Below, in pieces: positions 5,400-61,579 of a stretch of DNA of 64,000 nucleotides (position 1 is the stretch's first letter; every line of letters starts with the position of its first letter). A model generated the notes under the pieces. It made no database searches and had not been told where the DNA came from. It was given only the letters and a program-made list of their open reading frames with translations. The position numbers and the translations under genes are program-made. Origin of the DNA: Octopus sinensis (taxonomy: Eukaryota); NCBI RefSeq assembly GCF_006345805.1, contig NC_043007.1, positions 74,586,001 to 74,650,000 on the forward strand, given 5' to 3'.

Positions 5400-6400
5400 T
5401 CTTATTCGAGAATTACAGTACATTAGAAATAACGAAGGGAGCTAGATTAGAAGTTTGAGAAAACACTTGATGCGCTAGGATAGTTTAGGAGGAAGTTTCA
5501 AATAGATCAACATGCGTGACTTATCATCACTCGAAACAGAAATGGTTTTCAAGTAGATGGAACTGTTTATAATGTCAACAAGAAACTTTCAGGAAGACCG
5601 CGGACATCGAGGAGTCCCACAAAGGAAGAAAGGGTATTAGAAACGTATAGCCAAAATTCAAGAAAATTTATGCGGCAAATGATTCATGAGATAGAGATTT
5701 TGAAATTAAGAGTATTTTGCAATTTGAAATATTGTCATTGAAAAGTTACATTCCAAGAATTGTTTGTACTTCAAATGAAAATAATCGGGAACGAAGAGTG
5801 TAGTTTTGCGAGTGGCATTTGGCAGAATGTGCACGATTGCGCCTATTGAAGATTTGAGAATCCACATATTACTAAGGAATATCTTGTTAATTTACCAGGC
5901 GTTAAAGTATGGTGCAGTCAAAAGGATTAATTGGACCATTAATTTTTTTACTGTACTTTGAGTGGTTCTATTTACTTGAACTCGCCAAGTACTAGGGAGG
6001 ATTTTAGAGATGTGGATGTTTATTTCCAACAAGATGAGCGTCCTAACATTACCACAGTAATGTAAGGGCTTACCTTGTTGAGAAAAATGCTTCCCCTGGA
6101 TGAGGAGGTTCATTAGAATATTCTCTGCATTCACCAGACATCATACCACCAGGCATTTTTATGGCGATACATAAAAGACAAAATTTACAAAACACAACCG
6201 ACGACAGCCATCAAATTGATGGCCGCCATTGAAAGAAAATGCTCACAAATACGGAAAGAAATATTTCTTGATGTTTGCGATTGCATTATTTTGCATTATC
6301 AGTTGTGCCCAGACCAGAATGGTCATCGGTTTGAAAGGAGGCATTTATAAAATAATATAATTCTTGTGTAGATTCTAGTAAATTTTGAAAATGAAATGTA
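5400..6400 (+). mobile_element. Decayed Tc1/mariner-superfamily transposase relic
   Basis: Frameshifted peptides ...SGRPRTS, VKVWC...IGP, FQQDE, SPDI.P..FLW.YIKDKIY. Confidence 0.6.
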
Positions 6401-6431
6401 TTTTAATAAATACTAACTTTATAATCCATTT

Positions 6432-6625
6432 AAGGCGACGAGCTGGTAGAATCGTTTGCACACCGAGAGAAATGCTTAGCGGCATTTCGTCTGCCGTTAC
6501 GTTCTGAGTTCAAATTCCGCAGAGATCGATTAAATAGGTACCGGTTACGCACTGAGGTTGATGTAATCGACTTAATCCCTTTGTCTGTCCCCTCTATGTT
6601 TATCCCCCTATGAGCAATAAATAAA
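6432..6625 (+). mobile_element. SINE family A (CORE-like), single unit
   Basis: GGCGACGAGCTGGTAGAATCG head, GAGTTCAAATTCC B-box, CCCC...AATAAA tail. Confidence 0.8.
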
Positions 6626-6684
6626 TAAATACGTGTATTCATCTTTGGGAGGACGCCCTATGTATATATATATATATATATATA

Positions 6685-7092
6685 GGCACAGGAGTGGCTG
6701 TGTGGTAAGTAGCTTGCTAACCAACCACATGGTTCCGGGTTCAGTTCCACTGCGTGGCATCTTGGGCAAGTGTCTTCTGCTATGGCTCCGGGCCGACCAA
6801 TGCCTTGTGAGTGGATTTGGTAGACGGAAACTGAAAGAAGCCTGTCGTATATATGTATATATATATATGTGTGTGTTTGTTTGTGTGGCTGTGTTTGTCC
6901 CCCTAGCATTGCTTGACAACCGATGCTGGTGTGTTTACGTCCCCGTCACTTAGCGGTTCGGCAAAAGAGACCGATAGAATAAGTACTGGGCTTACAAAAA
7001 GAATAAGTCCCGGGGTCGATTTGCTCGACTAAAGGCGGTGCTCCAGCATGGCCGCAGTCAAATGACTGAAACAAGTAAAAGAGTAAAAGAGT
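6685..7092 (+). mobile_element. SINE family B, full length
   Basis: Complete head-microsatellite-tail structure ending GTAAAAGAGTAAAAGAG. Confidence 0.9.
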
Positions 7093-7299
7093 AATATATA
7101 TTTAGCATTATAGTAGATTCACCATGCTAAATACCTCCAGTCAGACTCTAATAACTTTGTAACTGAAGCCAATTCGAGCGATGATCAGCACAGCTTTTGT
7201 TGTACCTTAATTCGATGTAAATCATAAAAGTTACAATTGGTGTATCGTAATCATTATAAAGTAATTACAGGAAACGTCATGTCACTAATATTAACTCGT

Positions 7300-7550
7300 G
7301 TGAAGGCGGCGAGCTGACAGAATCGTTAATGCGGGGGTGGAGTTGGGGGTGGAGGGGAAAATGCTTAACGGCATTTTGTCCGCCTTTACGTTCTGAGTTC
7401 AAATGCCACCGGGGTCGACTTTGCCCTTCATCCTCTCGGAGTCATTAAAATAAATACCAGTTGAATACTGGGGGTCGATGTAATCGACTAACCGACTCTA
7501 ACCCTCCTCCGAAACTGCTGGCCTTGTGCCAAAATTTGAAACCAATATTA
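7300..7550 (+). mobile_element. SINE family A variant
   Basis: GGCGGCGAGCTGACAGAATCG head; GGGTCGACTTTGCCCTTCATCC core; TTGTGCCAAAATTTGAAACC tail. Confidence 0.75.
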
Positions 7551-7729
7551 GCTCGTTTGTTCTTATCGTTTAATACCAATTCATACCTGATCGTCAAAAA
7601 CCTAGAGTCAAAAGCGTTTCATTTGTTATCAAGCTGTCTTTAGGATTTTAGGTATAAATGCATCGTGGAGTACATTATCGAAAATGTACTTATAAATACT
7701 TATTTGCTTCTGAATTTTAAAAAATTTTG

Positions 7730-8490
7730 AATGTGTCAAAAGATAAAGCATTGTTTATTTAAGAGGATAAAATGCGATGAAAGAATATTAGACATTACTT
7801 AAATGAAAATGTAAATGCGAAAGGTCAATCTGTTTCAGGCCTCAAGACTCGGATTAACAAGACGGGTAAAACACGAGTGAAAATGTGATAGGTCAGCGAA
7901 TTTCGTTTAAAAAAGAAAGAGATAAGGTATAAACCAAGAAAGAACAGAAATAGAGAAAGAAGCGAATGAGATTTAGAGAGGAAAGTACTTAAGATTCAAG
8001 CAGTTTAGAAAATACCAGAATATATTAAGAGAGCAGTATGTCAAGTGTTTTCATTCATTACTGAACGGGCATAGCTGAAAACAGGAACTGTGTGGAACTA
8101 CCTCTATTGTATTCTTGATTCTTTTATTCTGAATTACAATCAAGGATATTAAAATGTTGGCTGATTCAAACAGGATAAAATACGCGGGTACTGGTTATGA
8201 AGATGAAGTGGAACCTGACAAAAGGGATCACATGATTATGAAATATAAATATATGGTATTTAAGATGGTTATGATTTCAATTTATATTTCTCTGATACTT
8301 GGTACTGCCGTCTTTTTAATGGTTTATTATGTATTTTTGTGGCGTCCTGTCAGGGGTAATTACAGTTCCCATCATATCTACATCGATCATCAGAAACCTG
8401 TTTACCATTCGGAATGAAGCATTTCAGAGGTAACATAATCATTTATCTGCTTTTTACTGTTGTAGAGTGTCCCAGCATCGGTTATGTGAA
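7730..8490 (+). repeat. Duplicated segment (paired with ~14405-15150) carrying the InaF-motif ORF
   Basis: Near-identical from ATGTGTCAAAAGATAAAG through CAGCATCGGTTATGT in both copies. Confidence 0.9.
8154..8417 (+). CDS. inaF-like: InaF-motif single-pass membrane micro-protein, copy 1 (87 aa)
   Basis: KMVMISIYISLILGTAVFLMVYYVFLWRP has the ungapped InaF-motif spacing (Y...A..L..YY...W.P); AAAATG start context; ORF preserved in the paralog. Confidence 0.8.
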   Translation: MLADSNRIKYAGTGYEDEVEPDKRDHMIMKYKYMVFKMVMISIYISLILGTAVFLMVYYVFLWRPVRGNYSSHHIYIDHQKPVYHSE

Positions 8491-9399
8491 ATTGTAAAGA
8501 ATTTTTATGCTATGGTGAAAAGAAGGGTGCTCTAAATTTAACTTCAGATCAAGTTGAAAATAATCAATCCCATACAACCATATATGACTTAGAGGTAATT
8601 GATCTCGTGTTTTCGAGAACATTGGCAATATTCAAATTTCTTCTTTGAGCTAGTTGCAGGTTTAAACTTAACATCCTTGATGGCATTTGCTTTCAAGCGA
8701 ACATGTACAACTGTTTTTACAATACCTGTATCGCTCTAAGGTACTGAGTTTATGATGAATTTAAAATTTTAGATATGAATCAAAATTTTTTTAGAAACAT
8801 AAAATAATCAGATCAAATATGAGCGTATATATAATATTATACGCATGGATATTTATGACTTCACCTTAAAATCACTGAAGACTTCAAAAAGAACCAAAAG
8901 TTGACAACTTAATGCATTAAACAATTATGCAAATTGTGTGTATGTGTGTGTGGGGGCGGTATTTACAAATTTGTGATATACATACAAATAGCAATCAATA
9001 TTAGCTTATTTGGAAACATTCATAACTCATTTTTTCCACACATATAAACCTGCACAAAATACGTACAACTCAATCTAAACTAAACTACACCTAATCTAAA
9101 CTGAAACCAAATTTTGTCTGTCTAAATCCATTGATGATTGTAAAGGTGTTGTACAGACATGGTCGTTTCATGAGCTGTAAGCTAAATGTTTGCTTGAAAG
9201 TTGCCCCTTTTGGAATGCTATTCCAAGACATCAGTTGTCAGGAGTACTCACTCCACATTTCACATTTTGTGATGGAGTATCTTCAGTCTCAACTGGTCAA
9301 TATTGGCGTCATCTGTGCATGATTCATTAAAGTTCGGCCTGCAGACAAACTACACAACAATCTCCCTTTCTCGTAATATAACGATTTCAAATTTTGGCA

Positions 9400-9580
9400 A
9401 AAGACCAGCAATTTTGGGGAAGAAGGGGTTAAATCGATTATTTCGACCCCAGCGCTCGTCTCCGAAAGAGTGAAAGATAAAGTTGACTTCTGCGGAATTT
9501 GAACTCACAACGTAAAGACGGACGAAATGCTGCTGAGTATTTTTCCCGGCGTGCTAACGATTCTGCCCGCTCGCCACCTT
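9400..9580 (-). mobile_element. SINE family A variant
   Basis: Reverse-complement head (CGCTCGCCACC) and TTCGACCCC core. Confidence 0.7.
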
Positions 9581-9659
9581 TCTTAGTTCTAATATGACAT
9601 GGAATGTTAGCAGCAGCTATGAAAATTCTTTGATAAGATTTGGACATTTGTTGTTGATC

Positions 9660-9900
9660 CTCAAAGTTTTACTTTAAACTTAAAAGTCAAAGGGTTTTCT
9701 CATCCATAAACGCATGAAAGAGAGCAATTGCTCTGCATGTTGTGTCTTCTAAGCTGTAGCGTAGCTTGGAAATTAGGCGAGGAAATGGTCCTTCCCGAAC
9801 GACGCTTTTATGGAGGTGGTACTTTTGGGTCTGTGAGACCCGGAAAGGGGGCAAAAGTCGAAAGGGCTGCCTCTGATAGCACACACCCTAGTAATACCAA
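9660..9900 (-). mobile_element. RTE-like LINE reverse transcriptase relic
   Basis: Frameshifted similarity to GFR.GRST.D.IF.LRQL.EK...L..AF.D..KAFD. Confidence 0.4.
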
Positions 9901-11189
9901 TGCTCATAAGCTAACGATTTTGCCAGCACGCCATCTTACGTCTAAGAAATATTAATCAATAATGCGGTATACACTATAGAGGCAGCATTTAATTGAAATA
10001 GCCATATGATACATCGATGGCTACTTTACTTAAATATTGCTTCAATTGAGGATACTGGATTATTAATCAGTCATGCAGCTGTTCGCAACATCAGTGATTG
10101 TCTTATTCATTTTTCCTTTCGCCCGATCATGTAACTGGTTGCGAGTACACGCCATTGAAAAAGCCTAAGTGAGCTGAAATGCATGTGGAGCGCTTACTGT
10201 CCGCTGCTGGGACAAATTTTCTCCTCTGATACTTGTGTTTTCAGCACAGCATGTTAAATAAGAGTTGTTATCTCAGGACATACTGCAGTAACTGGCCTGT
10301 CAACGTGATATATACATTAAGTAGGATGTATATAGATGGGTATTTTAATTAATCAACAACTATCTCTGGGCAGGTGTTTAAGGCAATGTGCCCCTCAGTG
10401 TTCCAGGTAGCGTGTCACTCAAAGTTGCAGGCAGTGTGTCACTCAGTACTCTACTCTAAATAATAATAAGCTGACAAGCATTGGGTACTAATGAATTCTT
10501 CATTTCCTGTCATTGATTTTCTCAGGGTTCATAATGTGACATGATGTAGGAGTTGAGAAACGTCTCAGGAGAGAGTACCGGGTTGGGATGAGAAGAAAGT
10601 TAATGGCATCGACTTGTGTTCAGATAGAACTATCAAGTCAAACTAGGGGTTGAAGTCATAATTTAGCTTTGATATACACTTGTTAACAATTCAAATATGC
10701 TCGAGGCATATTCAAACCCGTAAGAAAATCATTCATTACATTTTGTCAACGGAGAAGAATTCTCCATGTCAGTTCGGAGCGCCCTCTACTCAGATTAATG
10801 AATGTGTGCATTTAGGAGAAGTTATCTCCTCTTCAAGAGCGCTCCAAACTGAATGGTCCGAACTCATTTATACCTATTTGGCCGCAGTGAGAATTTTCGT
10901 CATGACAAAATATAGTGAACAGCTTTCAGACGTGTTCGAATATGTCTCAAACATATTTAACCTAAGTAACAAGTCTATATTTGTGTACATCATTTCTTAG
11001 CCCTTCTAATCCGTATCTTACCTTTCAATATGATATTGAAAATTAAACTCTAGCATCAATTTGGGATGAAAATAAGATTTTGTATTTTGGCACTTACCAT
11101 AAACATCATTAATAAATTTCAATAAAATTTACCAAGTTACGTCATAAAACTGCTTCTGCATGTTTATTCAAGCCAATTATTTCTGTTTG

Positions 11190-11400
11190 CTTGTGATTAT
11201 TAGGATTCTGCAAAACACACACACACACGCACACACACATACGACAAGCTTCTTTCAGCTTCCGTCGACCAAATCCACTCACAGGGCTTTGGTCGGCTCG
11301 GGGATATAGTAGAAGACAGCTGTCCGAGGTGCTAAGTTCAGTGGGACTGAACCCAGAATTTGTGGTTGGGAAGCAAGCTTCTTGCCACACAGCCACATAC
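11190..11400 (-). mobile_element. SINE family B, 5' half
   Basis: GCTTCTTTCAGCTTCCGTCGACCAAATCCACTCACA...CACACAGCCAC. Confidence 0.75.
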
Positions 11401-11429
11401 ATATTTATACATATACGTGTATGCAAATG

Positions 11430-11466
<37 letters not shown>

Positions 11467-11468
11467 TG

Positions 11469-11560
11469 GTCTTGCAACTCGAATTTCATGCTACTGCAAT
11501 CTTCAAGAGGAACCCTGAAGATCGCGGTTTCACCTGGAGGTCGCAGTGGCGTGAAACTCG
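11469..11560. ncRNA. Back-to-back hammerhead-like motifs between microsatellites
   Basis: Minus: TTGAAGA-T-TGC(AGTA)GCA-T-GAAA-TTCGAG-TT; plus: CTGAAGA...CTGGAGG-T-CGC(AGTG)GCG-T-GAAA-CTCG, truncated by (GC)n. Confidence 0.4.
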
Positions 11561-11889
11561 CGCGCGCGCGCGCGCGCGCGCGTGTGTGTGTGTGTGGTGT
11601 GTATGTGGTGTGTGTATGTAAATATATATACTTACATGCGGACATACATACATACACGGACAAAAACATACGTATAGGTATATACTAGTTTATATGTGCC
11701 CTCCAAAATAGCATTTAAAAAAAAAAACTGAAATTGATATTTAATAAATGCATTGTCATAACACGTATTCAATATATTTAATATACACTTATTAAAACAC
11801 ACCATGCATTACTTAGGCTCGATCAATGTTTATTCACCGAAATATTTTGTTAATAATCAACCAATGTAGAAAGGGTTTCTATACGCATT

Positions 11890-12935
11890 ATCATTCCAGA
11901 AGTTTTGAGACTTTCTCAGAAGCGACATTTATTAATTTCAAAGAAGTACAAAACTCTTGTTGTAGCGTTCCAGCCACTTCATGAAGACCCCGCGGGAGTC
12001 CTCTACAGTGAAGGTATCCAGGACTCTTGTCACAGCCACCTACGTATTCTCAATGTCTTCAAAATGACTGCCCCCGAGGTTCTCCTTCAACTCGAGGAAC
12101 AACCAAAAGTCACTGAGAGAAAATCTGGAGTGTAGTGAAATTGAAAGATGCCCATCTCTGTCAAGTAGTTGGTTACAGGCGGCGAGCTGGCAGAAACGTT
12201 AGCACGCCGGGCGAAATGCTTAGCGGTATTTCGTCTGCATTACGTTGTGAGTTCAAATTCCGCCGAGGTCGACTTTGCCTTTCATCCTTTCGGGGTCGAT
12301 AAATTAAGTACCAGTTACGCACTGGGGTCAATGGAATCGACTTAATACCTATGTCTGTCCTTGTTTGTCCCCTCTGTGTTTAGCCCCTTGTGGGTAATAA
12401 AGAAATAGGTATTTCGTCTGCGTTACGTTGTGAGTTCAAATTCCGCCGAGGTCGACTTTGCTTTTCATCCTTTCGGGGTCGATAAATTAAGTACCAGTTA
12501 CGCACTGGGGTCGATGTAATCGACTTATTACCTATGTCTGTCCTTGTGTGTCCCCTCTGTGTTTAGCCCCTTGTGGGTAATAAAGAAATAGGTTACTAGG
12601 ATGGAATTATTGACTGATGCATTGTTCTAGTGCAGCTGCTCAGGTCTTTTGCGACGAAATTTCTTCCTGAACGCATTCAACACCACTACAAAGTACTTTT
12701 TGTTGATCATCTGATCAAAGGGAACCCAGTAGATTTAGATGATTTCCTTTACTAAGGAAAAAGGGAATCATCATGAGCTTTCCGGAGGACTTGCTTTGCT
12801 TGGCCTCTTATGTCTGTGAAAAACGATGCTCAGCTCCTACAAGTTAATCTATAAGCAATTTAGAGTATTTCACATGCTTTTGTAGCGTTTTTGCCTAGCT
12901 TAACACAAAACTTAAATGCATAACGACCTTTCAAA
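11890..12935 (-). mobile_element. Internally deleted mariner element interrupted by a SINE A dimer
   Basis: N-terminal RYAFKFCVKLGKNATK (12860-12935) and C-terminal VTNYLTEMGI plus a frameshifted PD...FW.F..L-like segment (11900-12175). Confidence 0.7.
12177..12592 (+). mobile_element. SINE family A dimer (head + 2 x ~182-bp units)
   Basis: TATTTCGTCTG at 12228 and 12410; short GGTTAC flanking duplication. Confidence 0.9.
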
Positions 12936-12940
12936 TTGTC

Positions 12941-12984
<44 letters not shown>

Positions 12985-13489
12985 ATATATATGCGAGACA
13001 ATCCATCACTGGAACTGTGAAAATCAGTAAAACTTTCCAGAAGTTTATCATTTAAATATATATCAGCATGTCAAGATATGCAACTATATGCATGAGAATG
13101 CATACATAATTCTTACACACACACATACATGCATGTATGGATGCATGCGTGCATGCATACATACATACATACATACATACATACATACATACATACATAC
13201 ATACATACATACATACATACATACATACCCTGTTGTTGATATTAGAAACCGGTTCTTTCTCTATTGGCAAGAACTCTTAAAATAAACTGAATAATGACGA
13301 AGAGCTGATTGTATCTCAGAGTATGACTATCGTCCTGTGTGACCATAATTCTGAAGGTATTGAGATCATTGCTAGGCATTGTTTTTTGACCATGTCTGGT
13401 GTTCACAGTGATATCCATCCTCACATTTTAGAACACGAGAAGTTTCTGCAAGGCATCAATCATAGACCTTATTAGTCTAAAGGTATAAG

Positions 13490-14067
13490 GTGGCGAGCTG
13501 GCAGAAACGTTAGCACGCCGGACGAAATGCTTAGCGGTATTTCGTCTGCGTTACGTTGTGAGTTCAAATTCCGCCGAGGTCGACTTTGCCTTTCATCCTT
13601 TCGGGGTCGATAAATTAAGTACCAGTTACGCATTGGGGTCGATGTAATCGACTTAATACCTATGTCTGTCCTTGTTTGTCCCCTCTGTGTTTAGCCCCTT
13701 GTGGGTAATAAAGAAATAGGTATTTCGTCTGCCGCTACGTTCTGAGTTCAAATTCCGTCGACGTCGACTTTGCCTTTCATCCTTTCGGAGTCGATTAAAT
13801 AAGTACCAGTTATGCACTGGAATCGATATAATCGACTTAATCCGTTTGTCTGTCCTTGTTTGTCCTCTCTGTGTTTAGCCCCTTGTGGGTAGTAAAGAAA
13901 TAGGTATTTCGTCTGTCTTTACGTTCTGAGTTCAAATTCCGCCGAGGTCGACTTTGCATTTCATCCTCTCGGGGTCGATAGATTAAGTACCAGTTGCGTA
14001 CTTGGGTCGATCTAATCGATTGGCTCCCTCCCACAAAATTTCGGGCCTTGTGCCTAGAGTAGAAAAG
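13490..14067 (+). mobile_element. SINE family A multimer (3 full units plus variant tail) with 16-bp TSD
   Basis: ATTAGTCTAAAGGTAT (13471-13486) / ATTAGCCTAAAAGTAT (14068-14083). Confidence 0.9.
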
Positions 14068-14190
14068 ATTAGCCTAAAAGTATGCAAATTAATTTCTCAT
14101 CTTGCTTTTCAAGAATAAAAGTGTCGTTCATACTGTTCCGCTGGAGTTCTGTCAGTAGTAACGATTAACGGCTGCATTGGTTTACCTTAC

Positions 14191-14354
14191 CCAGGTAATA
14201 CGTAAACTATTCACGTCATTTTTATGAGCATGGAGCACCCACTGAATATCAAGGATAATTCCTTCCCTGAGAGTTCGAATATTTGTGTGACGCAGCTGTA
14301 CCAGCTGTTGCTCAACCCTCATGGAAGGAATCTGAAGAAACTTTGGCTTTTCAC
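14191..14354 (-). CDS. Putative internal coding exon of an unidentified gene (GEKPKFLQ...HAHKNDVNSLRITW)
   Basis: 164-nt stop-free segment bounded by TTCTATCAG| acceptor and TGG|GTAAGG donor; non-repetitive; no family recognised. Confidence 0.35.
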
Positions 14355-14818
14355 CTGATAGAACCAAACAATAAACTTACTTTTGGATGTTAAAGTCGGC
14401 ATTTGTATGTGTCAAAAGATAAAGTATTGTTTATTTAAGAGGATAAAATGCGATGAAAAAATATTATATATTAAATAAAAGGTGTAAATGTGAAAGGTCA
14501 ATCTGTTTCAGGCCTCAAGACTCGGATTAACAAGACGGGTAAAACACGAGTGAAAATGTGATAGGTCAGTGAATTTCGTTTAAAAAACGAAAGAGATGAC
14601 GTATAAACCAAGAAAGAACAGAAATAAAGAAAGAAGCGAATGAGATTTAGAGGGGAAAGTACTTAAGATTCAAGCAGTTTAAAATCTATGAGAATATATT
14701 AAGAGTGTCCAGTATTTTATTCATTACTGAACGGACATAGCTGAAACAGGAGCCGTGTGGAATTATTTCTTGCGTATTCTCTATTCTATTATTCCGAATT
14801 ACAAGGAAGGATATTAAA

Positions 14819-15082
14819 ATGTCGACTTATACAAACCGGATAAAATACGCGGGCACTGGTTATGAAGATGAAGTGGAACCTGACAAAAGGGATCATATGA
14901 TTATGAAATATAAATATTTGGCATTTAAGATGGTTATGATTTCAATTTATGTTTCTCTGATATTTGGTACTGCCGTCTTTTTAATGGCTTATTATATATT
15001 CTTGTGGCATCCTGTAAGGGGTAATTACAGTTCCCATCACATCTACATCGATCATCAGAAACCTATTTACCATTCGGAATGA
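14819..15082 (+). CDS. inaF-like: InaF-motif single-pass membrane micro-protein, copy 2 (87 aa)
   Basis: KMVMISIYVSLIFGTAVFLMAYYIFLWHP; same length as copy 1, with mostly conservative substitutions. Confidence 0.8.
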   Translation: MSTYTNRIKYAGTGYEDEVEPDKRDHMIMKYKYLAFKMVMISIYVSLIFGTAVFLMAYYIFLWHPVRGNYSSHHIYIDHQKPIYHSE

Positions 15083-15522
15083 AGCATTTCAGAGGTAACA
15101 CAATTATTTATCTGCTTTTACTGTTGTAGAGTGTCCCAGCATCGGTTATGTAAAATAGATAAAAAAAAAAGTTTACGTTTCAGTACCACATGAAAGGTAA
15201 GGATCTACTAGTAGACAATATATGGAAATTTGTTTAGAGACACGTTATCCTGAATCCGCGAAAGTGACAACGATTCTGTTGATGGTTCAATCTGAACATA
15301 TTTCAATCCATTTGCTATCAAATAACGATCCAAATAGCGATCTACAATTGTATTTATAAAGGTTTTATTTCTATAATGTATTGCATTAATGAAATCAATG
15401 TAAATCGTTTAACTTCGGTTATTTTAGAAATAATTCAGAAATTATTTAGAGGTAATTTTCAGATACTTAGTAACCAAGGAAAGAAGTCATAAAACAGAAT
15501 ATCAAGCAAATTTTATGTAATA

Positions 15523-15544
15523 TCTATATATATAAAACTGAGAA

Positions 15545-15575
<31 letters not shown>

Positions 15576-15750
15576 GCCTATCTGTATGTGTGCATCACTA
15601 AAACTCGAGAACCATCCAACCGATTTCATTCAAATTTTACACATGCACTACTTAGGGTCCATGGAGTGTTGTAGGCCAAAATATTTTCATCTTCTTGCCT
15701 AATTACGAGCCCAGAGCAATCTCTTACATTGTTTTGGTATTACATGTCTA
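15523..15750 (+). mobile_element. Helitron-like non-autonomous element, 5' part
   Basis: A|TCTATATATATAAAACTG start followed by (TG)n, same 5' pattern as the 57716 element. Confidence 0.4.
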
Positions 15751-15938
15751 AAGTGAAACAATAACATCTCTATTGTAATGTGAGATAATTGTTTCATTTT
15801 AAACAGTTTCTCTATTAATAGTGAAACTATATATATATATATATATATATATACATACAAACATACATACATACATACATACATACATACATACATACAT
15901 ACATACATGTATACAAAAATTCCTTAAACATACATACA

Positions 15939-15972
<34 letters not shown>

Positions 15973-16024
15973 CATACATACATACATATATACATACATA
16001 CATACATACATAAGGACCACACGA

Positions 16025-16440
16025 GTTGATATATATGAAAAAAAGTCAAGGTAGAAAATACTAAAATAATTTTATAAAAAAACATTTCAGTACCGGTTTC
16101 AGTCATTGAGACTTTTTCAACTGTAACTATGGAAAACAATTAAATTTTGGAAAAATGAAAAGAAAAGTATTTAAAAGAATATTTGTATAGTATTCAAATA
16201 CAAGGGGCATTTTCTTTGTTTCTTCCTGTCTCAGTCTCTCCTGTTTACTCTATGTAGAGGGAGAATGTGCTGCCGTATTTTTCTAGAACCTTATGACAAA
16301 GACTAATTTCTAGATATCCCATGACTAAGTTAGCAAAGGAGGGGGCCATTCTCGTACCCATCGCAGTCCCCGATTAATGTCGATAGAAATTGTCTTTGAA
16401 GACGAAGTAGTTATTTTCCAGGATGAATTATAGCCCTTCT
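16025..16440 (-). mobile_element. Internally deleted Penelope-like copy (same family as 40190-43175)
   Basis: 16270-16440 matches the RT region at ~42010-42180 (GGCCATTC.TGTACCCATCGCAGTCCCCGATT); 16030-16200 matches the 3' end at ~40190-40350. Confidence 0.8.
16088..16123 (-). ncRNA. Minimal type-I hammerhead ribozyme, U3-A8 core variant
   Basis: CAG-TTGAAAA-AGTC(TCAAT)GACT-GAAA-CCGG-TA-CTG. Confidence 0.7.
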
Positions 16441-16448
16441 ATCATGCA

Positions 16449-16622
16449 TTCTTCTTCTTCTTCTTCTTCTTCTTCTTCTTCTTCTTCTTCTTCTTCTTCT
16501 TCTTCTTCTTCTTCTTCTTCTTCTTCTTCTTCTTCTTCTTCTTCTTCTTCTTCTTTCTTCTTCTTCTTCTTCTTCTTCTTCTTCTTCTTCTTCTTTCTTC
16601 TTCTTCTTCTTCTTCTTCTTCT
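16449..16622. repeat. (TTC)n microsatellite
   Basis: Direct inspection. Confidence 0.95.
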
Positions 16623-18299
16623 TTAAGGAGATAATTAAATGCATTCAATAGTTTTATAAAATATTGAAAATGTTTAAAAAATTATGGTGCACATATAGAT
16701 GAACTAATATCAGTTAACTTCCAAACGTTTGTTAAGCAATTACACGAATGATTGTACCTGAATTTTATTTTCTCTTTACAATTGAGCAAATGGATGTTTC
16801 GTGCCAGAAAATTTTACATCAAAATTTAGCCTTTCTGTGTAAGGTGATGGGTAAGGAGAATTGTTAGGGGAAACGTAAGCTAATCTTAAATGAGATTTTT
16901 AACTGTCTGAATCCATACATGATTGCAAGTATCGTGTACAGATATCATCGGTACATGAACTGTAATGTAAGCTTGAAAGATGCTCCTTTTGAGATGTTGA
17001 TCCAAGACATCGACTATTGGGAATATTCTCATCAGTTCCTTGGCCTTATGGCACAACCTTTTCATTATTAGATGGTTGATATATGCAAAATACTTTGGAG
17101 TACAGTCTGCAGACAAGCAATATCTCGACTTCTCTCAGCAGTAACGGTATACCCTATGAGATGCTAGCACCAAATATGGATTCTTACACAAGGCATAAAA
17201 ATATGATGTATGACGTATAAAAGGGAGCCAGTGTTATGCAAAGTGTTTCTCCTTAGGCAGAGCCAATGCGATTGAGGGAGATCATTGTGATTTCTTTTTA
17301 CAGTTTTTAATGATATTCAGGTTTCCTGTTTATGGATTTGCTGTGATGAAGTGGTGGAAATTACGCAAAATTTACGCTTTACCATCTGTCTCTAGTGCGA
17401 AACATTCAAACGGATGGATATCGCACAGCACAAAACAGGAGTAACTGAAGACGAATTATTATAAACCTCCTCATTATTGCATTGTTGTTCATTTTGCATC
17501 ATTGGATTGTTGACTCATTGATGTAATATTGACAGATTTATCATTTTTGAACTGTGCTTCCATAGTTTTTATTGGAAATTATGAAAACAGCTTCTTATCC
17601 GAATTAAAAAAAAAGTTGTGCCAGGTTTCTAGGTCTTGATACTATAATAGACACATTTTATATATAATCTCTTTGCTTCTCCTTAATGTACCTTTCATTG
17701 TCATTGTGAGATACTGATTTTGGACAATATCTGTGGTTGCTACCATTTTCAAATGATGTTGAATTCTTTTTGGGGGGAATAAATTTTCATGAGATATTCA
17801 TCAAAATCTTGTCTTTGACATTTGTCTCAGGTAGAGCGTACTTCAGTACTTCACTATCAATAATAATAAACTAAGCACTGGAAGGTATAAAGAAGCTCAT
17901 GGCGGAATATTTCCTCCTAATATATTCAGGCCAGACCATTAGTTCAAACGTATGATGCAGTTAAATATTGTCATTTTCCGCAAAAATATTTTCTCGTGGT
18001 AACCTAAACTAACCCCACACCCTTACTGGACAGATCATCGGTCACTCGGACTTGGCCGTTACTTTTAAAATAGCACCAAAAAGTAAACTTTAGCATCAAT
18101 TTGAAATGGAAAGGAAATTTTAAGAATTTCGTTTCCCCATTATGAAAACCCTTACTAAATTTCAATAAAAGTTACTCAAGTTGTGTTCTACACTAACATC
18201 TGTATCAATATTTAAGTCAATTAATCCTCTTTTAGATAATTAGGGTCCTAACCATGTTGAAACACACACCTACACACACATGATGGCTGCCCCCTCGTT

Positions 18300-19464: not shown

Positions 19465-21719
19465 CACTGGTCAACAAAATGAAACTTCTTTTGATCATCA
19501 GAGTTGCTGATTGACTTTTCGGGGTTAATTTTTGATGCTGATTACGAATCTGAAGTCCGATTTCCTTTATCAGGTCACATTTTCATGTTAATGATACCTG
19601 CTGTTTTCACTTATAGGATACGTAAAGCATGTTTATATAAAGTATATGGAATACGAGATACAATAATTTCATGGCTTTTTATTGTACAACATTAAAATTA
19701 TTGTGTACAAATAAGTTAGAATACACTCAAACTTAAAAACAACTTTAAATCTTTAGGATTTGGACTTTCTATGGTGTTTTGCCTCAGGTTCATCGCTGTA
19801 TAACATCCAACAGTAGCCAGCTAACATTCCTGCATTCTAAAATCATTGATATCGTTGTTCCATCGATGCAATATCTTGATGAAAGCGTTCCCCTTGCTCG
19901 TCAGACACTGTTCCAAGGTTCTCTGCAAAAAAGTCCAGATGTGAATCAAAGAAATGGACTTTTAGTGACATCCGACAGCCCATTGCAGCGTAGGAGTCTA
20001 GAAGACATTTCACTCCGTTTCTAAACTCTAGAGATCTCCTGTTGCCTAGGAAATTTTGACAGAGCCATTTGAAGGATTCCCAGGCTTTAAGTTCAATCTC
20101 ATCCAGTGCTGTGAGGAAGTGGTTGTCCTTCAGGAGTTCTTTTATCTGCGAACCTATGAATATGCCCTCCTTCAGTTTTGCCTCGGTGATATTTGGAAAT
20201 TTGACCATCACATATTCAAAACCTTTTAAGCTTTTCCTGGCAAGTGTCTTCACGAATTGTTTCATGAGGCCAAGCTTTATGTGAAGAGGGAGAAGAATAT
20301 TCTTCTAAGTTTAAAAGTAGCTTACTCTGGACGCTAGAAACTCCCGGCTCATATGATTTTCGCAAAGGCCACCCTAATTGTACATAGTGCTTGTCAGCTG
20401 CACGACTGTTCCATAGGCATAAAAAGCAACAATGTTTTGTGAACCCAGATTGCATTCCCATCAACATTCCAATCATCTTCAAGTCTCCACATATTTTCCA
20501 GCTGTAGTTTGTATACTTTATGGCATTGAGGAGTACTTGCATGTTTTCATAGCACTCCTTCATGTGCACTGAATGTCATGTGGAAATGGATGGTTTCTTA
20601 TTGTGTAGTAGTACTGCCTTCAGGCCTCTCTTAGATGAATCAATGAATAAGCGCCATTCAGCTGGAACATGCTCTTGGAACAAACAGCGAAATAACTCAT
20701 CAGTGTTATTACTGAAACAAAGTGGTCCATCAACAGAGAAGCATGAACTCACATCCCTATTTCTCTTCCTGAAATGAGTAATACAAACATCTTTCTTAAG
20801 CAGACACTTTTCTTGTAGGCGAGATGTTAATAGTTCAGCTTTATCCTTCGACAATGACAAGTCTCTAACTAAATCATTTAAGTTTCCTTGAGAAAATTTC
20901 TGTGGTACGTCTTGATTTTCAATCATGAAATCTGCATCCACTTCAGTGTCTTCAACAGTAGTAGTATTTTCTTCAGGAAATACATCTTCGTCAGACATTT
21001 TCTGTTGTTATTGGAACAGGAAGATCATCGTTGTTCTGTGGTACTGGTCTTCTTGCTGATTCCAAGTTGGGATACACAATCTTATGCTTGGTCTTTACAG
21101 TAAACCCATATACATTAACGTTGTAGAAATAACAGTCCATGAAATGATCCTTTGGCTCTCTCCATATCATAGGTATTGCAAACGGCATTGCTCCCTTCCT
21201 CTTATTTAGCCAATCCCTTAGTCCATTTGAACAAGCTGAGCAGATGATGTGCGGGGCCCAACTCTTATCTTGATCTCCAAGAGAGCAGGCTAAGTATAAC
21301 TGGTAAATCTTCTTGATTTCCCTTGTGCTAGGACTCTGCTGAGCTTTGGTGGTAAATGAACCACAGACATGACAAAATATATCAGGTCTGTTCTTGCAAT
21401 GCCTTGACATCCTGAGTAGAATTTGATGATGATGATGACTTGACACCTTAAACAGAAAGTAAAATTTATGAAAAGAAAAGATTATGAAAACATAAAATTA
21501 CAAAATGAATACAAATAGTTATAAAACAGAAGTCAGAATTTACCTGTATAAGACGTTTACGTTTAGCGATACTGCTGATGGGAGTTATATACCTCTCTTA
21601 TCTCATCAGAAAAACTGTGCCTGATAGAAGGAAACCGATTACATTTTTGAAATCTGCAAACAAAACTACATATAAAACACCATATAATATCCCTGATGAA
21701 AATTAGCTGTTGACCAGTG
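19465..21719 (-). mobile_element. Full-length decayed Chapaev-like (CMC superfamily) DNA transposon
   Basis: TIRs CACTGGTCAACA / TGTTGACCAGTG with imperfect subterminal repeats; TAA/CAA flanks; frameshifted transposase with N-terminal C..C motifs, WRLFIDSSK, PLHIKLG and SDEQGERFHQDI motifs (family name from recalled motifs). Confidence 0.75.
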
Positions 21720-28500: not shown

Positions 28501-29655
28501 TTCTATGTTTGACTTTTGCTTTATATTCGTACAAGTTGGCTCCAAGTCTCACCCAGAGACCTCAAGAGACAACAGGGTTGGAAGTTCATGTTGTTGTTAT
28601 GCCTAGTGTGCCATATATTTGGGGGGTGGGGATGTTGTACTAATGAATGTCTAAAAAAAAAAGTTTTTTTTTTTTTTTTTTAAACCGAAAATTATGTTTG
28701 TTTTAAACCTTGAGATTACATAGAGAGTATTTTGCGTAGGATATGAGCAGTTCCCATGAGCACTATCTTTTGAACTTCTGCCATTTTTGGGTTTCCTGGT
28801 ATCTGAGTTAGGTAGCTATCAGCCCCTTTTGCTATCATTCCCAGGGCACCTATGACAACAGGTATTGTTTTAGTCTTCAGCTTCCACATTTTGCTGATTT
28901 CTATTTCAAGATCTTTATATTTGCTTAGTTTTTGGTAGGTCTTGACAGATACGTTTATATCGATTGGGACAGTCATATCAATGAGGAGGCATGTTCTTTG
29001 TTTGAAGTCTTTCAATATGATGTCTGGCCTATTTGCATCTATCTTCCTGTCAGTTTGAATGGTGAAGTTCCAGAGGAGTGAGATGTGGTCATTTTCAAGC
29101 ACTGGGGGTGGTTTGTGTTCCCACCAGTTTTTTTCATGGGGCAAATCCAGGTTTTTACAGATTACCCAGTGAATATATTGTGCAGCTCTATCGTGCCTGT
29201 TGAGATACTCTGTAGGCGCTAGAAGACTGCACTTGGAGACCACATGGTCAATGGTTTCATTTTGTTGCTTGCATACACGACACGTTGGACTGCTTCTGAT
29301 CTTTAATATGTTGGCCTGGTAGTTTCTTGTTGGTAGGCATTGATCTTGAGCTGCTATGATAAACCCCTCTGTTTCAGATTTTAAGCCAGAGGCCATTAGC
29401 CATTGATGGGTCAGGGCTTTGTCGATATCTGCATTATTCGCTCTCTTTGGGTATTTGCCATAGAGAGGTTTTTCTTGCCATTTATTATTCAGAATATCTA
29501 AGGCCGCAGTTTTGGCACGGGTTTTCATGCGCCTAGCTTTTTCTGTGCTTGTTTCTTGTATATCTATCTCTAATTCCGAAATTGGTTGTATTCGGAATTC
29601 ACTTAGATATTCCTTTGCCTGTTTTGTGACTGAGTATGATGCTTTCTTGTTTTCA

Positions 29656-30505: not shown

Positions 30506-31662
30506 TCTATGTTTGACTTTTGCTTTATATTCGTACAAGTTGGCTCCAAGTCTCACCCAGAGACCTCAAGAGACAACAGGGTTGGAAGTTCATGTTGTTG
30601 TTATGCCTAGTGTGCCATATATTTGGGGGGTGGGGATGTTGTACTAATGAATGTCTAAAAAAAAAAGTTTTTTTTTTTTTTTTTTAAACCGAAAATTATG
30701 TTTGTTTTAAACCTTGAGATTACATAGAGAGTATTTTGCGTAGGATATGAGCAGTTCCCATGAGCACTATCTTTTGAACTTCTGCCATTTTTGGGTTTCC
30801 TGGTATCTGAGTTAGGTAGCTATCAGCCCCTTTTGCTATCATTCCCAGGGCACCTATGACAACAGGTATTGTTTTAGTCTTCAGCTTCCACATTTTGCTG
30901 ATTTCTATTTCAAGATCTTTATATTTGCTTAGTTTTTGGTAGGTCTTGACAGATACGTTTATATCGATTGGGACAGTCATATCAATGAGGAGGCATGTTC
31001 TTTGTTTGAAGTCTTTCAATATGATGTCTGGCCTATTTGCATCTATCTTCCTGTCAGTTTGAATGGTGAAGTTCCAGAGGAGTGAGATGTGGTCATTTTC
31101 AAGCACTGGGGGTGGTTTGTGTTCCCACCAGTTTTTTTCATGGGGCAAATCCAGGTTTTTACAGATTACCCAGTGAATATATTGTGCAGCTCTATCGTGC
31201 CTGTTGAGATACTCTGTAGGCGCTAGAAGACTGCACTTGGAGACCACATGGTCAATGGTTTCATTTTGTTGCTTGCATACACGACACGTTGGACTGCTTC
31301 TGATCTTTAATATGTTGGCCTGGTAGTTTCTTGTTGGTAGGCATTGATCTTGAGCTGCTATGATAAACCCCTCTGTTTCAGATTTTAAGCCAGAGGCCAT
31401 TAGCCATTGATGGGTCAGGGCTTTGTCGATATCTGCATTATTCGCTCTCTTTGGGTATTTGCCATAGAGAGGTTTTTCTTGCCATTTATTATTCAGAATA
31501 TCTAAGGCCGCAGTTTTGGCACGGGTTTTCATGCGCCTAGCTTTTTCTGTGCTTGTTTCTTGTATATCTATCTCTAATTCCGAAATTGGTTGTATTCGGA
31601 ATTCACTTAGATATTCCTTTGCCTGTTTTGTGACTGAGTATGATGCTTTCTTGTTTTCATGT
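30505..31662 (-). mobile_element. R4/Dong-clade fragment (family 1), copy 2; ORF 30720-31532
   Basis: Translation identical to copy 1; offset 2004 bp. Confidence 0.9.
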
Positions 31663-49734: not shown

Positions 49735-50220
49735 CTAAAATTTGAGTTTCCTGACGGGTGTTTCTTCCGCTTTAGAATCTTTCACAGAATCTTTTCGGTT
49801 ATTTATTGCCTTTTCCTGTTTTAAAAAATGCACAACTTTCGAATCAAGCACATTCATTTTTGATACCTTTATCTGTTTTGCGATTGTCTTCGCATTTAGA
49901 AGGCGATCAGTAAAGTCTCGGTAATATATGTCAACCCGCGGGTCCGTTTCATGCAGTCTGGGATTTTTACTCTTCTTTTTAGCATATTCATGAGCACAAC
50001 CTCGAATAAAATGTCGGAAGTTATTAATAAGGAAATAGGGTTTATTTCTCTCTTTATATAATGGGAATATACAAGCATCTGCGATTTTTACAACGCCTTT
50101 CGGTAGACACTCTTTCACCATTTTTTCACATGTTTTAGAATTCATTCGCGTTTCTTCTTCAAAGTCCCTTGCACCTGCAAGTTTAGCGAACGCTTGAAAA
50201 ACGTCATCCAAATTCGCCAT
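49735..50220 (-). CDS. TPPP: TPPP/p25-alpha paralog with eroded C-terminus (161 aa from MANLDD)
   Basis: First ~115 aa colinear with the 61043-61579 protein; AAAATG context matches the paralog, so the track's 50391 start (TTG) is probably not used. Confidence 0.8.
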   Translation of the reverse strand: MANLDDVFQAFAKLAGARDFEEETRMNSKTCEKMVKECLPKGVVKIADACIFPLYKERNKPYFLINNFRHFIRGCAHEYAKKKSKNPRLHETDPRVDIYYRDFTDRLLNAKTIAKQIKVSKMNVLDSKVVHFLKQEKAINNRKDSVKDSKAEETPVRKLKF

Positions 50221-50261
50221 TTTGAGGGCTTCGGATGTAAAGTTACGAAAGTTAAGGTGGT

Positions 50262-50432
50262 CTGTATCGTTACGCTGATTCTTGTTTTTGTTCTGCAATT
50301 GAGAACGATGCTTGTCTTTTAAAACAAGCGAATGGCTTCTATTGATGACGTATGCATCACGATTCATGCCTGACCAATATTTTTCAAGCAAATTTTCGTT
50401 TTCATCATAAAAAATGTCTCGATGTCATAATA
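50262..50432 (-). promoter_or_regulatory. Conserved upstream region of TPPP copy 1 with CRE-like TGACGTA
   Basis: TATCGTTACGCTGA, TTCTATTGATGACGTA, TTCATCATAAAA and ATGTCATAAT blocks shared with 61620-61762. Confidence 0.5.
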
Positions 50433-61042: not shown

Positions 61043-61579
61043 TCATGCTTTTACTTTATCATACGTCCCTTCGCCTTTATAGGCACCCACGTAACCACTG
61101 TTGTCTACCATCTCTTTTCGGCCAGTCATTCCCTTGCCTTTGCCTTCCTCATCAAAACGCTCTTTGTGTGTTCCAGTGTAACCAGCCACATCCGTAAGAC
61201 CGGCGACATTGCCAGTTTTTGATATTTTTACTTCTTTGACGTTTGGTCTCCCTTTTTTTAGCATTTCGACAAAGTCTTCGTAATATTTGTCCACCTGCGG
61301 GTCCCCTTCTGGCAGTTTGGGATTTTTTGACTTGTTCTTGGCATATTCATGTGCACAACCACGTATAAATAGGTGGAAGTTATTTATAAGGAGGAACTGT
61401 TTACCTTTCTCTTTGTATTTTGGGAATATAGAGGCATCTGCAATTGTTACAACTTCTTTTGGTAGACAGTCTTTCACCATTTTTGCACAAGCTTTAGAAT
61501 TCATTTGTTTTTCATCTTCAGGAGTCTTTGCACCTGCAAGCTTAGTGAACGCTCGAAAAACCTCATCTAATTCCGACAT
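61043..61579 (-). CDS. TPPP: Tubulin polymerization-promoting protein (TPPP/p25-alpha family), full length, intronless, 178 aa
   Basis: F..F...MNSK...KMVKDC, LTD..GYTGTHKERFD..GKGKG..GR and GYVGAYKGEGTYDK family motifs. Confidence 0.92.
   Translation of the reverse strand: MSELDEVFRAFTKLAGAKTPEDEKQMNSKACAKMVKDCLPKEVVTIADASIFPKYKEKGKQFLLINNFHLFIRGCAHEYAKNKSKNPKLPEGDPQVDKYYEDFVEMLKKGRPNVKEVKISKTGNVAGLTDVAGYTGTHKERFDEEGKGKGMTGRKEMVDNSGYVGAYKGEGTYDKVKA

Follow-up and report, generated by a model that had tools for sequence, protein, structure and literature searches.

Tandem genes for divergent InaF-type micro-proteins in Octopus sinensis

Results

Organization of the locus

Analysis of a 64,000-nucleotide stretch of the Octopus sinensis genome (NC_043007.1, positions 74,586,001 to 74,650,000; hereafter the window) reveals two intact open reading frames, ORF A and ORF B, each encoding an 87-residue protein with a single membrane helix (Table 1). 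This agrees with the first-pass annotation, which had described two such ORFs 6.7 kb apart; the distance from start to start is 6665 bp. The two proteins differ at 12 of 87 residues (positions 2-5, 34, 35, 45, 49, 57, 60, 64 and 83), where roughly a dozen had been announced, and are aligned by BLASTP with 74/83 identities (E 4e-59). An in-frame stop lies 7 codons 5' of the ATG of ORF A, the stop-to-stop ORF starting at 8133. Only one hydrophobic segment is present (Kyte-Doolittle peak 2.44, residues 39-57), and the AlphaFold2 model consists of a single helix spanning residues 23-71, with pLDDT > 88 across residues 31-60. From the positive-inside rule and the analogy with INAFM2/ROME, the N-terminus is predicted to be cytoplasmic and the C-terminus to lie outside.

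Table 1. Position of the features of the locus within the window
Feature	Position	Strand	Basis
Duplicated unit, copy A (conserved upstream block, ORF and 84 bp of 3' flank)	7726..8501	+	Alignment to copy B
Conserved non-coding block 5' of ORF A; candidate promoter, 5' UTR or enhancer	7726..8050	+	Divergence comparison
ORF A, divergent InaF-motif micro-protein (type 1), 87 aa	8154-8417	+	ATG start, TGA stop
Membrane helix with InaF-like motif (…YYVFLWRP), ORF A codons 35-65	8256..8348	+	PF15018, hydropathy, AF2
Conserved tail VRGNYSSHHIYIDHQKPVYHSE, ORF A codons 66-87	8349..8414	+	Family alignments, hhalign
Spacer between copies, 5.9 kb	8502..14401	.	Part SINE-like repeats/microsatellites, remainder unique within the window
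Duplicated unit, copy B	14402..15166	+	Alignment to copy A
ORF B, divergent InaF-motif micro-protein (type 1), 87 aa	14819-15082	+	ATG start, TGA stop
Membrane helix with InaF-like motif (…YYIFLWHP), ORF B codons 36-65	14924..15013	+	PF15018

Both ORFs are embedded in a duplicated unit of ~776 bp, bearing out the ~760 bp first proposed. Its two copies are 90.4% identical across 778 columns (BLASTN, E = 0), and the similarity ends abruptly at both edges. Within the 64-kb window neither a third copy nor other paralogue types were detected by BLASTN, by TBLASTN with all paralogues or by a family HMM run on all six-frame ORFs of at least 25 aa. In the spacer, 1733 of 5900 bp have further copies in the window (9423-9580, 11039-11462, 12174-12593 and 13485-14071). 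A duplication that once took in more flank was considered and rejected, the SINE copies 5' of both units being far more diverged than the unit itself; the match between 9089-9232 and 16873-17011 (145 bp, 72%), considered as an old duplicated flank, was likewise rejected and resembles independent repeats.

The upstream block diverges by 0.053-0.091 between A and B and by 0.076-0.097 between A and L001, a contig from another octopus (see below), as compared with up to 0.13 (A-B) and 0.27-0.30 (versus L001) at synonymous sites of the ORF, and up to 0.15-0.16 in the stretch 8051-8153 directly 5' of the ATG. No Rfam match indicative of a structured RNA was obtained for the block in a scan of 6000-17500. 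It is also without similarity to the paralogue loci, to which DNA similarity is kept only in the part coding for helix and tail. Between A and B, the 264 coding bp are free of indels, while 512 bp of flank contain 7 indel events (~3.6 coding indels expected, P(0) roughly 0.03).

Relationship to the InaF-motif family

The definition of the InaF motif was taken from a review and the ROME paper, and the corresponding Pfam profile is PF15018 (InaF-motif, 35 positions, gathering cut-off 21.8 bits). Against it, residues 35-65 of copy A match positions 3-33 with 16.7 bits (E 0.007) and residues 36-65 of copy B match positions 4-33 with 16.5 bits (E 0.009), so that by the operational rule of Pfam the window proteins are not called InaF-motif members; the type-1 orthologue of Octopus bimaculoides gives no PF15018 match. 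YukC, an unrelated model, scores about equally on the window proteins, but it matches only 2 of 9 family members, whereas PF15018 is matched in the same register by 8 of the 9.

An exhaustive HMM search with a profile built for these proteins (type 1) found only 6 proteins, a small cephalopod/mollusc family, with E values from 1e-15 to 2e-5. Of these, P0003 (E 1e-15) reaches 24.3 bits on PF15018 and P0006 (E 2e-5) 35.2 bits; P0011, P0012, P0013 and ORFs 2 and 4 of Argonauta score 23.3-27.1 bits, also above the cut-off. In the Logan proteins P0004, P0005 and P0007-P0010, a long stretch at the C-terminus was discarded as a gene-caller artefact in which TGA is read as Trp, the true lengths being 85-93 aa. 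Comparison by hhalign of the type-1 profile with seven relatives passing the cut-off gives a probability of 99.7% and an E value of 3.4e-26 over 56 columns (residues 32-87), and the motif is located in the sole membrane helix of a small protein. Because of this transitive and profile-profile homology to relatives above the cut-off, the window pair is placed in the InaF family, in which it belongs to type 1, the branch of a cephalopod/mollusc subfamily that has diverged furthest. The InaF label given at first therefore stands by homology and fails by the Pfam rule.

The subfamily is characterized by a conserved His/Tyr-rich tail that follows the membrane helix, PVRGNYSxHHIYxGHxxPxFHPE-stop. The criterion retained for its members is a helix ending in YYxFxWxP followed by [VI]RG[NK]YSxHH[IV][YF]x[GD]HxxxxxH[PS]x and a stop within 0-2 codons; both window copies conform to it. 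Thirteen positions are invariant in a 9-sequence alignment (Y44, G50, L55, Y59, F61, W63, P65, G68, N69, Y70, S71, P82 and H85), and a second, larger family alignment comprises 14 sequences. No mention of the tail was found in the INAF and INAFM2 literature examined.

Argonauta hians carries four intact same-strand family ORFs (61-91 aa) in tandem within 16 kb, of which one is annotated, and O. bimaculoides has three annotated members. Its type-1 orthologue, A0A0L8FQV9, is an 'Uncharacterized protein' without Pfam domain in UniProt; it lacks one Tyr of the YY pair and is 93% identical to B and 87% to A. The type-2 and type-3 paralogues (A0A0L8FRJ6, A0A0L8FQP3 and Ahia01_001250700) and a 93-aa cuttlefish homologue share with type 1 the helix/tail architecture and the stop position, with 44-60% identity in the C-terminal 55 residues. 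These proteins score above the Pfam cut-off. Their N-terminus is basic and rich in Pro and Ser (…PRRKSS…KLAG…), whereas that of type 1, NRIKYAGTGYEDEVEPDKRDH, is acidic and of unrelated sequence; the type-1 helix is also the more divergent one (GTAVFLM vs GLAFFLG). A further relative is probably from a bivalve, the origin of ERR3431203 being deduced from its accession, which adjoins that of a Mytilus coruscus run. The lineage-specific expansion initially suggested is borne out only in part: the family itself is an old tandem cluster, wider than a recent expansion in octopus, with four members in Argonauta, three in O. bimaculoides and a homologue in cuttlefish.

Age of the duplication

Contig L001 (from runs SRR118693xx, as is L005) carries a single type-1 copy, 86% identical to the copy A unit. 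It joins the upstream flank of A to the downstream flank of B, of which 15270-15532 and 16634-17033 are retained, and the 5.9-kb spacer is absent. A retrocopy origin was rejected because A keeps the ancestral upstream flank and B the ancestral downstream flank; moreover, the unit carries ~430 bp 5' of the ORF and A is without poly(A) tail. L001 was also considered as a hybrid of A and B produced by recombination (NAHR), which is unsupported, A-like and B-like sites being interleaved without a 5'/3' switch. In a three-way comparison, 25-33 changes are private to each window copy and 43 to L001. Judged from its ~9% divergence, the duplication is old, roughly of the age of the split from the L001 species. 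The ~776-bp unit would have been duplicated in tandem at about the time when the lineages separated, and the spacer would have been filled in simultaneously or later.

Coding constraint

Comparison with L001 yields dN/dS ratios of 0.26 (A) and 0.20 (B), with a significant synonymous excess (p = 0.0035 and 0.0006, respectively) and 14 of the 24-25 coding differences at third codon positions; for other family members the ratio is 0.19 (Sepia) and 0.23 (type 2). These substitution patterns show purifying selection on the type-1 ORFs between species. The first-pass annotation had named dN/dS as a check, with values near 1 speaking against it: the ratio with the other octopus lies clearly under 1, but between the two copies the point estimate of 0.45, although below 1, does not differ significantly from it (p = 0.11), and therefore one of the two window copies could be drifting. 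All 12 replacements between A and B are conservative and fall at variable columns, all family-invariant residues being kept. The type-1 gene of the other octopus has a 1-bp deletion, which recurs in the contigs of several runs and leaves a product ending short of the helix; type 1 may be dispensable in an octopus with such a frameshifted single copy.

Expression

The cuttlefish homologue is represented by a contig of ~1.8 kb found in 67 Logan sample blocks, which include Sepia esculenta larval RNA-seq and a run listed as Sepia pharaonis transcriptome. The cuttlefish homologues are transcribed, the RNA coming from larvae or whole animals. An exact-sequence look-up in a collection of 15 billion proteins returned neither window protein, and in the assembly collection no exact match was found for the two window proteins or the O. 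bimaculoides orthologue. The claim that such genes are missed by annotation is half right: the O. bimaculoides orthologue does have a UniProt entry, A0A0L8FQV9, yet the claim holds for the window products, absent from the protein collection, and for Argonauta, where a single ORF of the array is annotated.

Discussion

Taken together, the locus is best explained, with somewhat better than even confidence, by tandem paralogous genes for InaF-type micro-proteins, each preceded by a conserved ~430-bp block of its own, whose products are proposed partners of TRPC channels. The helix would pack on the transmembrane periphery of a TRPC-type channel, as suggested by Drosophila INAF-B/C only, and the micro-protein would stabilize or chaperone the channel protein post-translationally. 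The obvious candidate partner would be alpha-TRPC, enriched in the eyes of cuttlefish and octopus embryos (PMC13402157). The paralogues might serve different channels, tissues or stages, as do the fly's four INAF proteins, encoded together at inaF. An auxiliary role towards TRP in octopus photoreceptors is a proposal drawn purely from Drosophila, and no link between inaF and cephalopods was found in the literature searched.

Several observations would also fit real InaF-family micro-proteins whose partner is not a phototransduction TRP: another TRP or a membrane or signalling protein in a non-visual tissue could be bound, and the tail, predicted to be external, could give the subfamily a function of its own. 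The cuttlefish transcripts come from whole larvae or animals and not from eyes specifically, the conserved tail is neither part of the 35-residue Pfam motif nor mentioned in the INAF/INAFM2 literature examined, and type 1 differs from the other paralogues in having an N-terminal region of unrelated sequence. Cephalopod photoreceptors, on the other hand, are rhabdomeric, and an eye-enriched alpha-TRPC exists in these animals. Precedent is found on both sides, since the vertebrate homologue ROME/INAFM2 is a beta-catenin-binding regulator of Wnt signalling that also reduces Ca2+ responses (PMC13012068), so that an InaF motif is no guarantee of a TRP role, whereas TRP association in Drosophila is the one function of the motif to have been defined by genetics (PMC13012068, PMC3433705). 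We regard such a partner as a serious but rather doubtful alternative. That one or both copies are decaying relics, which have stayed intact by accident and are either unexpressed or made redundant by the type-2/type-3 paralogues, seems unlikely. Such decay would account for the A-B ratio not significantly below 1, the frameshifted gene of the other octopus, the motif Tyr lost in O. bimaculoides and the absence of both products from the protein collection; moreover, as estimated from the counts, with ~10 substitutions in each copy an 87-codon ORF would stay open by chance in ~60% of cases. It is at odds with the confinement of indels to the flanks, the conservative replacements off the invariant columns, the interspecies ratios with their significant synonymous excess, and an upstream block better conserved than synonymous sites in both copies.

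Haplotypic duplications are known to cause spurious gene-family expansions (PMC10548655), and the pair might accordingly be two haplotypes of one locus placed in series by the assembly. This is very improbable given the ~9% divergence with 7 indels, the unrelated sequence between the copies, their differing flanks and a number of private changes per copy which, set beside that of another species, is far above allelic divergence. Chance similarity of hydrophobic helices, the ORFs then forming an unrelated orphan family, is suggested by the sub-threshold Pfam match and the comparable YukC score, but is effectively refuted by the 56-column homology to seven proteins passing the cut-off and by the same-register PF15018 matches in nearly all members, of which YukC recognizes only two.

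Beyond the pair of tandem InaF-type genes described here, a broader but tentative reading, which we hold to be possible and not probable, is that octopods, perhaps molluscs generally, possess a conserved tandem InaF-type array, an independent analogue of fly inaF with an undescribed external His/Tyr-rich tail, whose members are perhaps partitioned among TRPC channels or tissues and of which the window type-1 gene would be the fastest-evolving, lineage-variable member, duplicated here, frameshifted in another octopus and short of a motif Tyr in O. bimaculoides. If true, the array would provide tractable candidate auxiliary subunits for cephalopod phototransduction or for sensory channels of skin and suckers, most of them invisible to current annotation. 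In flies, TRP channels of rhabdomeric photoreceptors depend on small partner proteins; cephalopods keep a constrained multi-copy InaF-type set with an extra conserved tail, as seen at this locus and in the four-gene Argonauta array. Its members, mostly unannotated or 'uncharacterized', are concrete candidates to be placed beside the eye-enriched alpha-TRPC. Micro-proteins this small escape Pfam cut-offs and gene callers; the window pair are new, divergent members of an already known family, and nothing known is overturned.

Comparison with known InaF systems

INAF-type TRP subunits were defined by fly genetics and biochemistry, through TRP association and mutual stabilization (PMC3433705, PMC13012068). 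The 81-aa INAF-B spans the membrane once, binds TRP and is required for TRP protein, not mRNA (PMC3433705). Like INAF-B and INAF-C, the octopus proteins are small (87 aa), single-pass and carry the motif in and at the end of the helix, and like the fly inaF complex locus (INAF-A to INAF-D) the octopod cluster places several paralogous micro-proteins side by side. Unlike Drosophila INAF, the window copies match the Pfam model only weakly, below threshold, and carry their tail beyond the Pfam motif, which stops at WxP; whereas the fly proteins share a transcript, each octopod paralogue has an ORF to itself, at distances of 2.5-7 kb, and each of the two window copies has a conserved upstream block of its own. 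TRP binding is established for INAF-B and is a proposal for the octopus pair. Vertebrate INAFM2 (ROME) and INAFM1 share with the octopus pair the InaF-motif membrane helix and a single-exon gene. INAFM2 has a short N-terminus inside the cell and its C-terminus outside (PMC13012068), the orientation predicted from charge for the octopus pair. It differs from the latter in its length of 153 aa and its 97-residue disordered, glycosylated ectodomain, in place of which the octopus proteins have a highly conserved tail of 22 residues, and the roles described for ROME concern Wnt/beta-catenin signalling and metastasis (PMC13012068).

Structure of the duplicated unit

The first-pass annotation had described a tandem pair of intact 87-residue ORFs, differing at about a dozen residues, within a duplication of approximately 760 bp, and this description holds at sequence level. 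The products of the two ORFs, A and B, show 74/83 identities by BLASTP (E 4e-59) and differ at 12 of 87 positions over their full length; the edges of the duplicated block are sharp, similarity between the copies stopping abruptly on either side of a unit made up of the ORF with about 430 bp 5' of its ATG and 84 bp 3' of its stop codon. No further copy was detected in the 64-kb window by BLASTN or TBLASTN, nor when all paralogues identified subsequently served as TBLASTN queries, and a 14-member family HMM searched against all six-frame ORFs of the window recovered only A and B. The 84-bp stretches following the stop codons are 8–12% diverged, both between the copies and relative to another octopus. 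They contain AG/GTAAC 12 nt past the stop and TTGTAG 36 nt beyond, and may be part of a 3' UTR, mark a very small intron-like feature or have arisen by chance.

Coordinates of the features in the window and of the Argonauta hians array
Feature	Position	Strand	Description
ORF A	8154-8417	+	87 codons, ATG start
ORF B	14819-15082	+	87 codons, ATG start
Duplicated block	7726-8501 vs 14402-15166	+	90.4% identity over 778 aligned columns
Upstream block	7726-8050
Post-stop stretches	8418-8501, 15083-15166
SINE-like repeat copies	12177-12604, 13488-14039, 9456-9580 (-), 6433-6627, 7359-7541
Four abutting ORFs	19843-21446	-	140, 117, 140, 151 aa
Identical ORF pair	28716-29528, 30720-31532	-	270 aa each, 2004 bp apart; zf-RVT 27.1 bits (cut-off 27.5)
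Consecutive ORFs	40918-43056	-	RVT_1 (35.5 bits), then GIY-YIG nuclease domain (23 bits)
Diverged p25-alpha ORF	49735-50391	-	218 aa; 20.3 bits (cut-off 22.6)
p25-alpha/TPPP-family ORF	61043-61579	-	178 aa, intact; PF05517, 106.7 bits, full-length match
Argonauta ORFs 1-4 (L012, BAAFZT010000086.1 8690871-8711146)	296-490, 7455-7688, 10001-10276, 16173-16448	same strand

Assignment to the InaF-motif family

The assignment of the pair to the InaF-motif proteins, also made in the first-pass annotation, falls below threshold in the direct test and stands by the indirect one. The Pfam model PF15018 (InaF-motif, "TRP-interacting helix") aligns residues 35–65 of A with 16.7 bits and residues 36–65 of B with 16.5 bits, spanning profile positions 3–33 of 35; both scores lie under the cut-off of 21.8 bits, which is a miss under Pfam's own rule, and YukC, an unrelated Pfam model, scores the window proteins about as high. 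When 1.84 billion representative proteins were searched exhaustively by HMMER with a profile of type 1 (A, B and the O. bimaculoides protein A0A0L8FQV9, P0001), only 6 proteins were returned, and two additional word-indexed profile searches gave 3 more relatives. Seven family members pass the PF15018 cut-off: P0006 from an ENA contig (35.2 bits), P0013 (27.1), ORF 4 (24.5) and ORF 2 (23.3) of Argonauta hians, the O. bimaculoides proteins A0A0L8FQP3 (P0012, 24.8) and A0A0L8FRJ6 (P0011, 23.9), and P0003 from Logan contig L005 (24.3). Within a 9-member alignment, PF15018 is matched in the same register by 8/9 sequences and YukC by only 2/9, and when the type-1 alignment is compared profile to profile with the seven passing proteins, the probability of homology is 99.7% (E 3.4e-26) across 56 columns. 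The shared register and the homology to passing relatives clearly, if indirectly, indicate that the window proteins are divergent homologues within a clade of InaF-motif proteins.

Members of this subfamily are 61–93 residues long and, except for the short Argonauta ORF 1, have in common a helix ending in YYxFxWxP followed by a conserved tail, [VI]RG[NK]YSxHH[IV][YF]x[GD]HxxPx[FY]H[PS][EN], with the stop codon 0–2 codons later. The 35-residue Pfam motif does not include this tail, and no mention of the tail was found in the searched literature on INAF and INAFM2 (PMC13012068, PMC3433705). For several Logan-derived proteins, long C-termini were rejected as a gene-caller artefact in which TGA is translated as Trp; the products called on contigs L009, L010, L011 and L013-L022 have 131–169 residues for a real length of 85–93, and the entry "translates_to_query: no" in the protein collection marks such cases. 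In a distance tree type 1 forms a long branch, sister to the octopod paralogues of types 2 and 3 together with the cuttlefish and ERR3431203 sequences, and its N-terminus, NRIKYAGTGYEDEVEPDKRDH, is not related to those of the other members, which are basic and Pro/Ser-rich. In the 86-residue A0A0L8FQV9 only one Tyr of the YY pair is left (…LMAYIFLW…), and a PF15018 scan of this protein gives no InaF match whatsoever; the missing residue could reflect a genuine in-frame deletion or else a mistake in assembly or annotation.

Origin of the pair and selective constraint

Contig L001, from another octopus, contains one unit, whose upstream flank runs into the private upstream sequence of A (back to 7521) and whose downstream flank matches the private downstream sequence of B (15270–15532, 16634–17033). 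Since a single copy joins these two flanks, the ancestral state was one unit, from which the pair in the window arose by tandem duplication, with a 5.9-kb spacer composed partly of SINE-like repeats and microsatellites. A haplotig artefact is ruled out by the approximately 9% divergence, the indels and the differing flanks. Private changes in the three-way alignment (33 in A, 25 in B, 43 in L001) place the duplication at nearly the age of the split from the L001 species; B differs from the O. bimaculoides protein at 6 positions and from A at 12, and the duplication may even predate the O. bimaculoides split, with A evolving faster. The upstream block is less diverged (0.05–0.10) than synonymous sites (0.13–0.30) and so probably holds regulatory or UTR sequence; an Rfam scan of it gave no match.

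Selection on the ORFs was gauged by comparison with L001 (runs SRR11869384/90/91) and of the copies with each other. Against L001, dN/dS by the Nei-Gojobori method comes to 0.26 (A) and 0.20 (B), 14 of 24–25 differences fall at third codon positions, and the synonymous excess is significant (p = 0.0035 and 0.0006, respectively). The A–B value of dN/dS is 0.45, or 0.29 once the variable first five codons are left out, and is not significantly below 1 (p = 0.11). The copies show no indel in 264 coding bp vs 7 events in 512 flanking bp (about 3.6 expected in the ORF, P(0) ~0.03), and their replacements are all conservative (M/L, V/A, I/V, L/F, R/H), none at invariant columns. Other family members are likewise constrained: a pair of Sepia sequences gives an omega of 0.19, and the Octopus–Argonauta comparison of type 2 gives 0.23. 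On the other hand, the type-1 copy of L001 has lost 1 bp (AAGATGGTT to AAGATGTT), so that its reading frame stops short of the helix, and this deletion is present in contigs of several runs (L001/L002/L003, SRR11869391/90/84, positions ~619–881); in samples with this truncated copy the type-2 paralogue is intact (L005-L008). Because of this frameshift and the Tyr missing in O. bimaculoides, type 1 seems to vary between lineages and to be under the least constraint in the family.

Other features of the window

The two p25-alpha ORFs, about 11 kb apart on the same strand, one of them much more diverged, may be another old tandem duplicate. RVT_1 followed by GIY-YIG is the pairing that typifies Penelope-like retroelements. 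In strongly AT-skewed surroundings, the 3' part of a retroelement seems to have been repeated in tandem very recently, giving the two 270-residue ORFs. The four abutting ORFs look like one longer coding region split by frameshifts, possibly a decayed transposase or domesticated-element gene; a Pfam scan of 19846–20265 (140 aa) and 20994–21446 (151 aa) gave no match. A SINE-like repeat of about 180 bp, of GGTTCAAATTCCGCCGAGGTCGA-type sequence, occurs in many copies, some head-to-tail with a period of about 184 bp, at which Rfam reports no family at threshold.

Topology, expression and possible function

The window proteins have a single hydrophobic stretch (residues 39–57, Kyte-Doolittle maximum 2.44), and the AlphaFold2 model, built from an 8-sequence alignment, consists of one long helix (residues 23–71; pLDDT > 88 across residues 31–60) with disordered tails on both ends. 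Since 5 Lys/Arg are found in the 15 residues preceding the helix vs 1–2 in the 15 following, the positive-inside rule would put the N-terminus in the cytoplasm and the 22-residue tail outside, an orientation identical to that of vertebrate INAFM2/ROME (PMC13012068). The family is transcribed in decapodiforms: the cuttlefish homologue lies on a contig of about 1.8 kb, near-identical (99.7–100%) across the ten contigs compared, 67 sample blocks index its protein, among them Sepia esculenta larval RNA-seq (SRR19578100, SRR19578107, SRR31864758, SRR31864759; PMC11917092), and a 97%-identical contig occurs in SRR3011300, whose listing describes a whole-animal transcriptome of Sepia pharaonis (PMC5541922).

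Drosophila INAF-B, an 81-residue single-pass protein, co-localises with TRP and binds it, and without INAF-B the TRP protein falls to 5–10% while its mRNA is unchanged (PMC3433705). Cephalopods have alpha- and beta-TRPC, the former strongly eye-enriched in embryonic Sepia officinalis and Octopus maya (PMC13402157). By homology, our best guess is that the helix of the octopus micro-proteins would bind a TRPC channel and that the bound micro-protein would stabilise it. A partner other than a TRP channel is a serious rival, because the vertebrate InaF homologue has non-TRP roles as well (PMC13012068).

The PF15018 family is already known, and two O. bimaculoides paralogues bear the domain in precomputed annotations; our literature search found no paper connecting inaF with cephalopods. 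What is new here is the placing of the type-1 branch in this family, the branch's duplication in this genome, the conserved subfamily tail and the octopod tandem array. The latter is seen in Argonauta hians, where 20 kb of sequence around Ahia01_001250700 holds four intact family ORFs in tandem and only the third is annotated (Ahia01_001250700, 1/4); the three UniProt entries of O. bimaculoides have neighbouring accessions and presumably lie on one scaffold. At the DNA level, the window unit resembles the paralogue loci only in that half of the ORF which encodes helix and tail, the pattern expected for old paralogues under protein-level constraint. Such a row of InaF micro-protein genes is reminiscent of inaF in the fly, a locus encoding INAF-A to INAF-D (PMC13012068).
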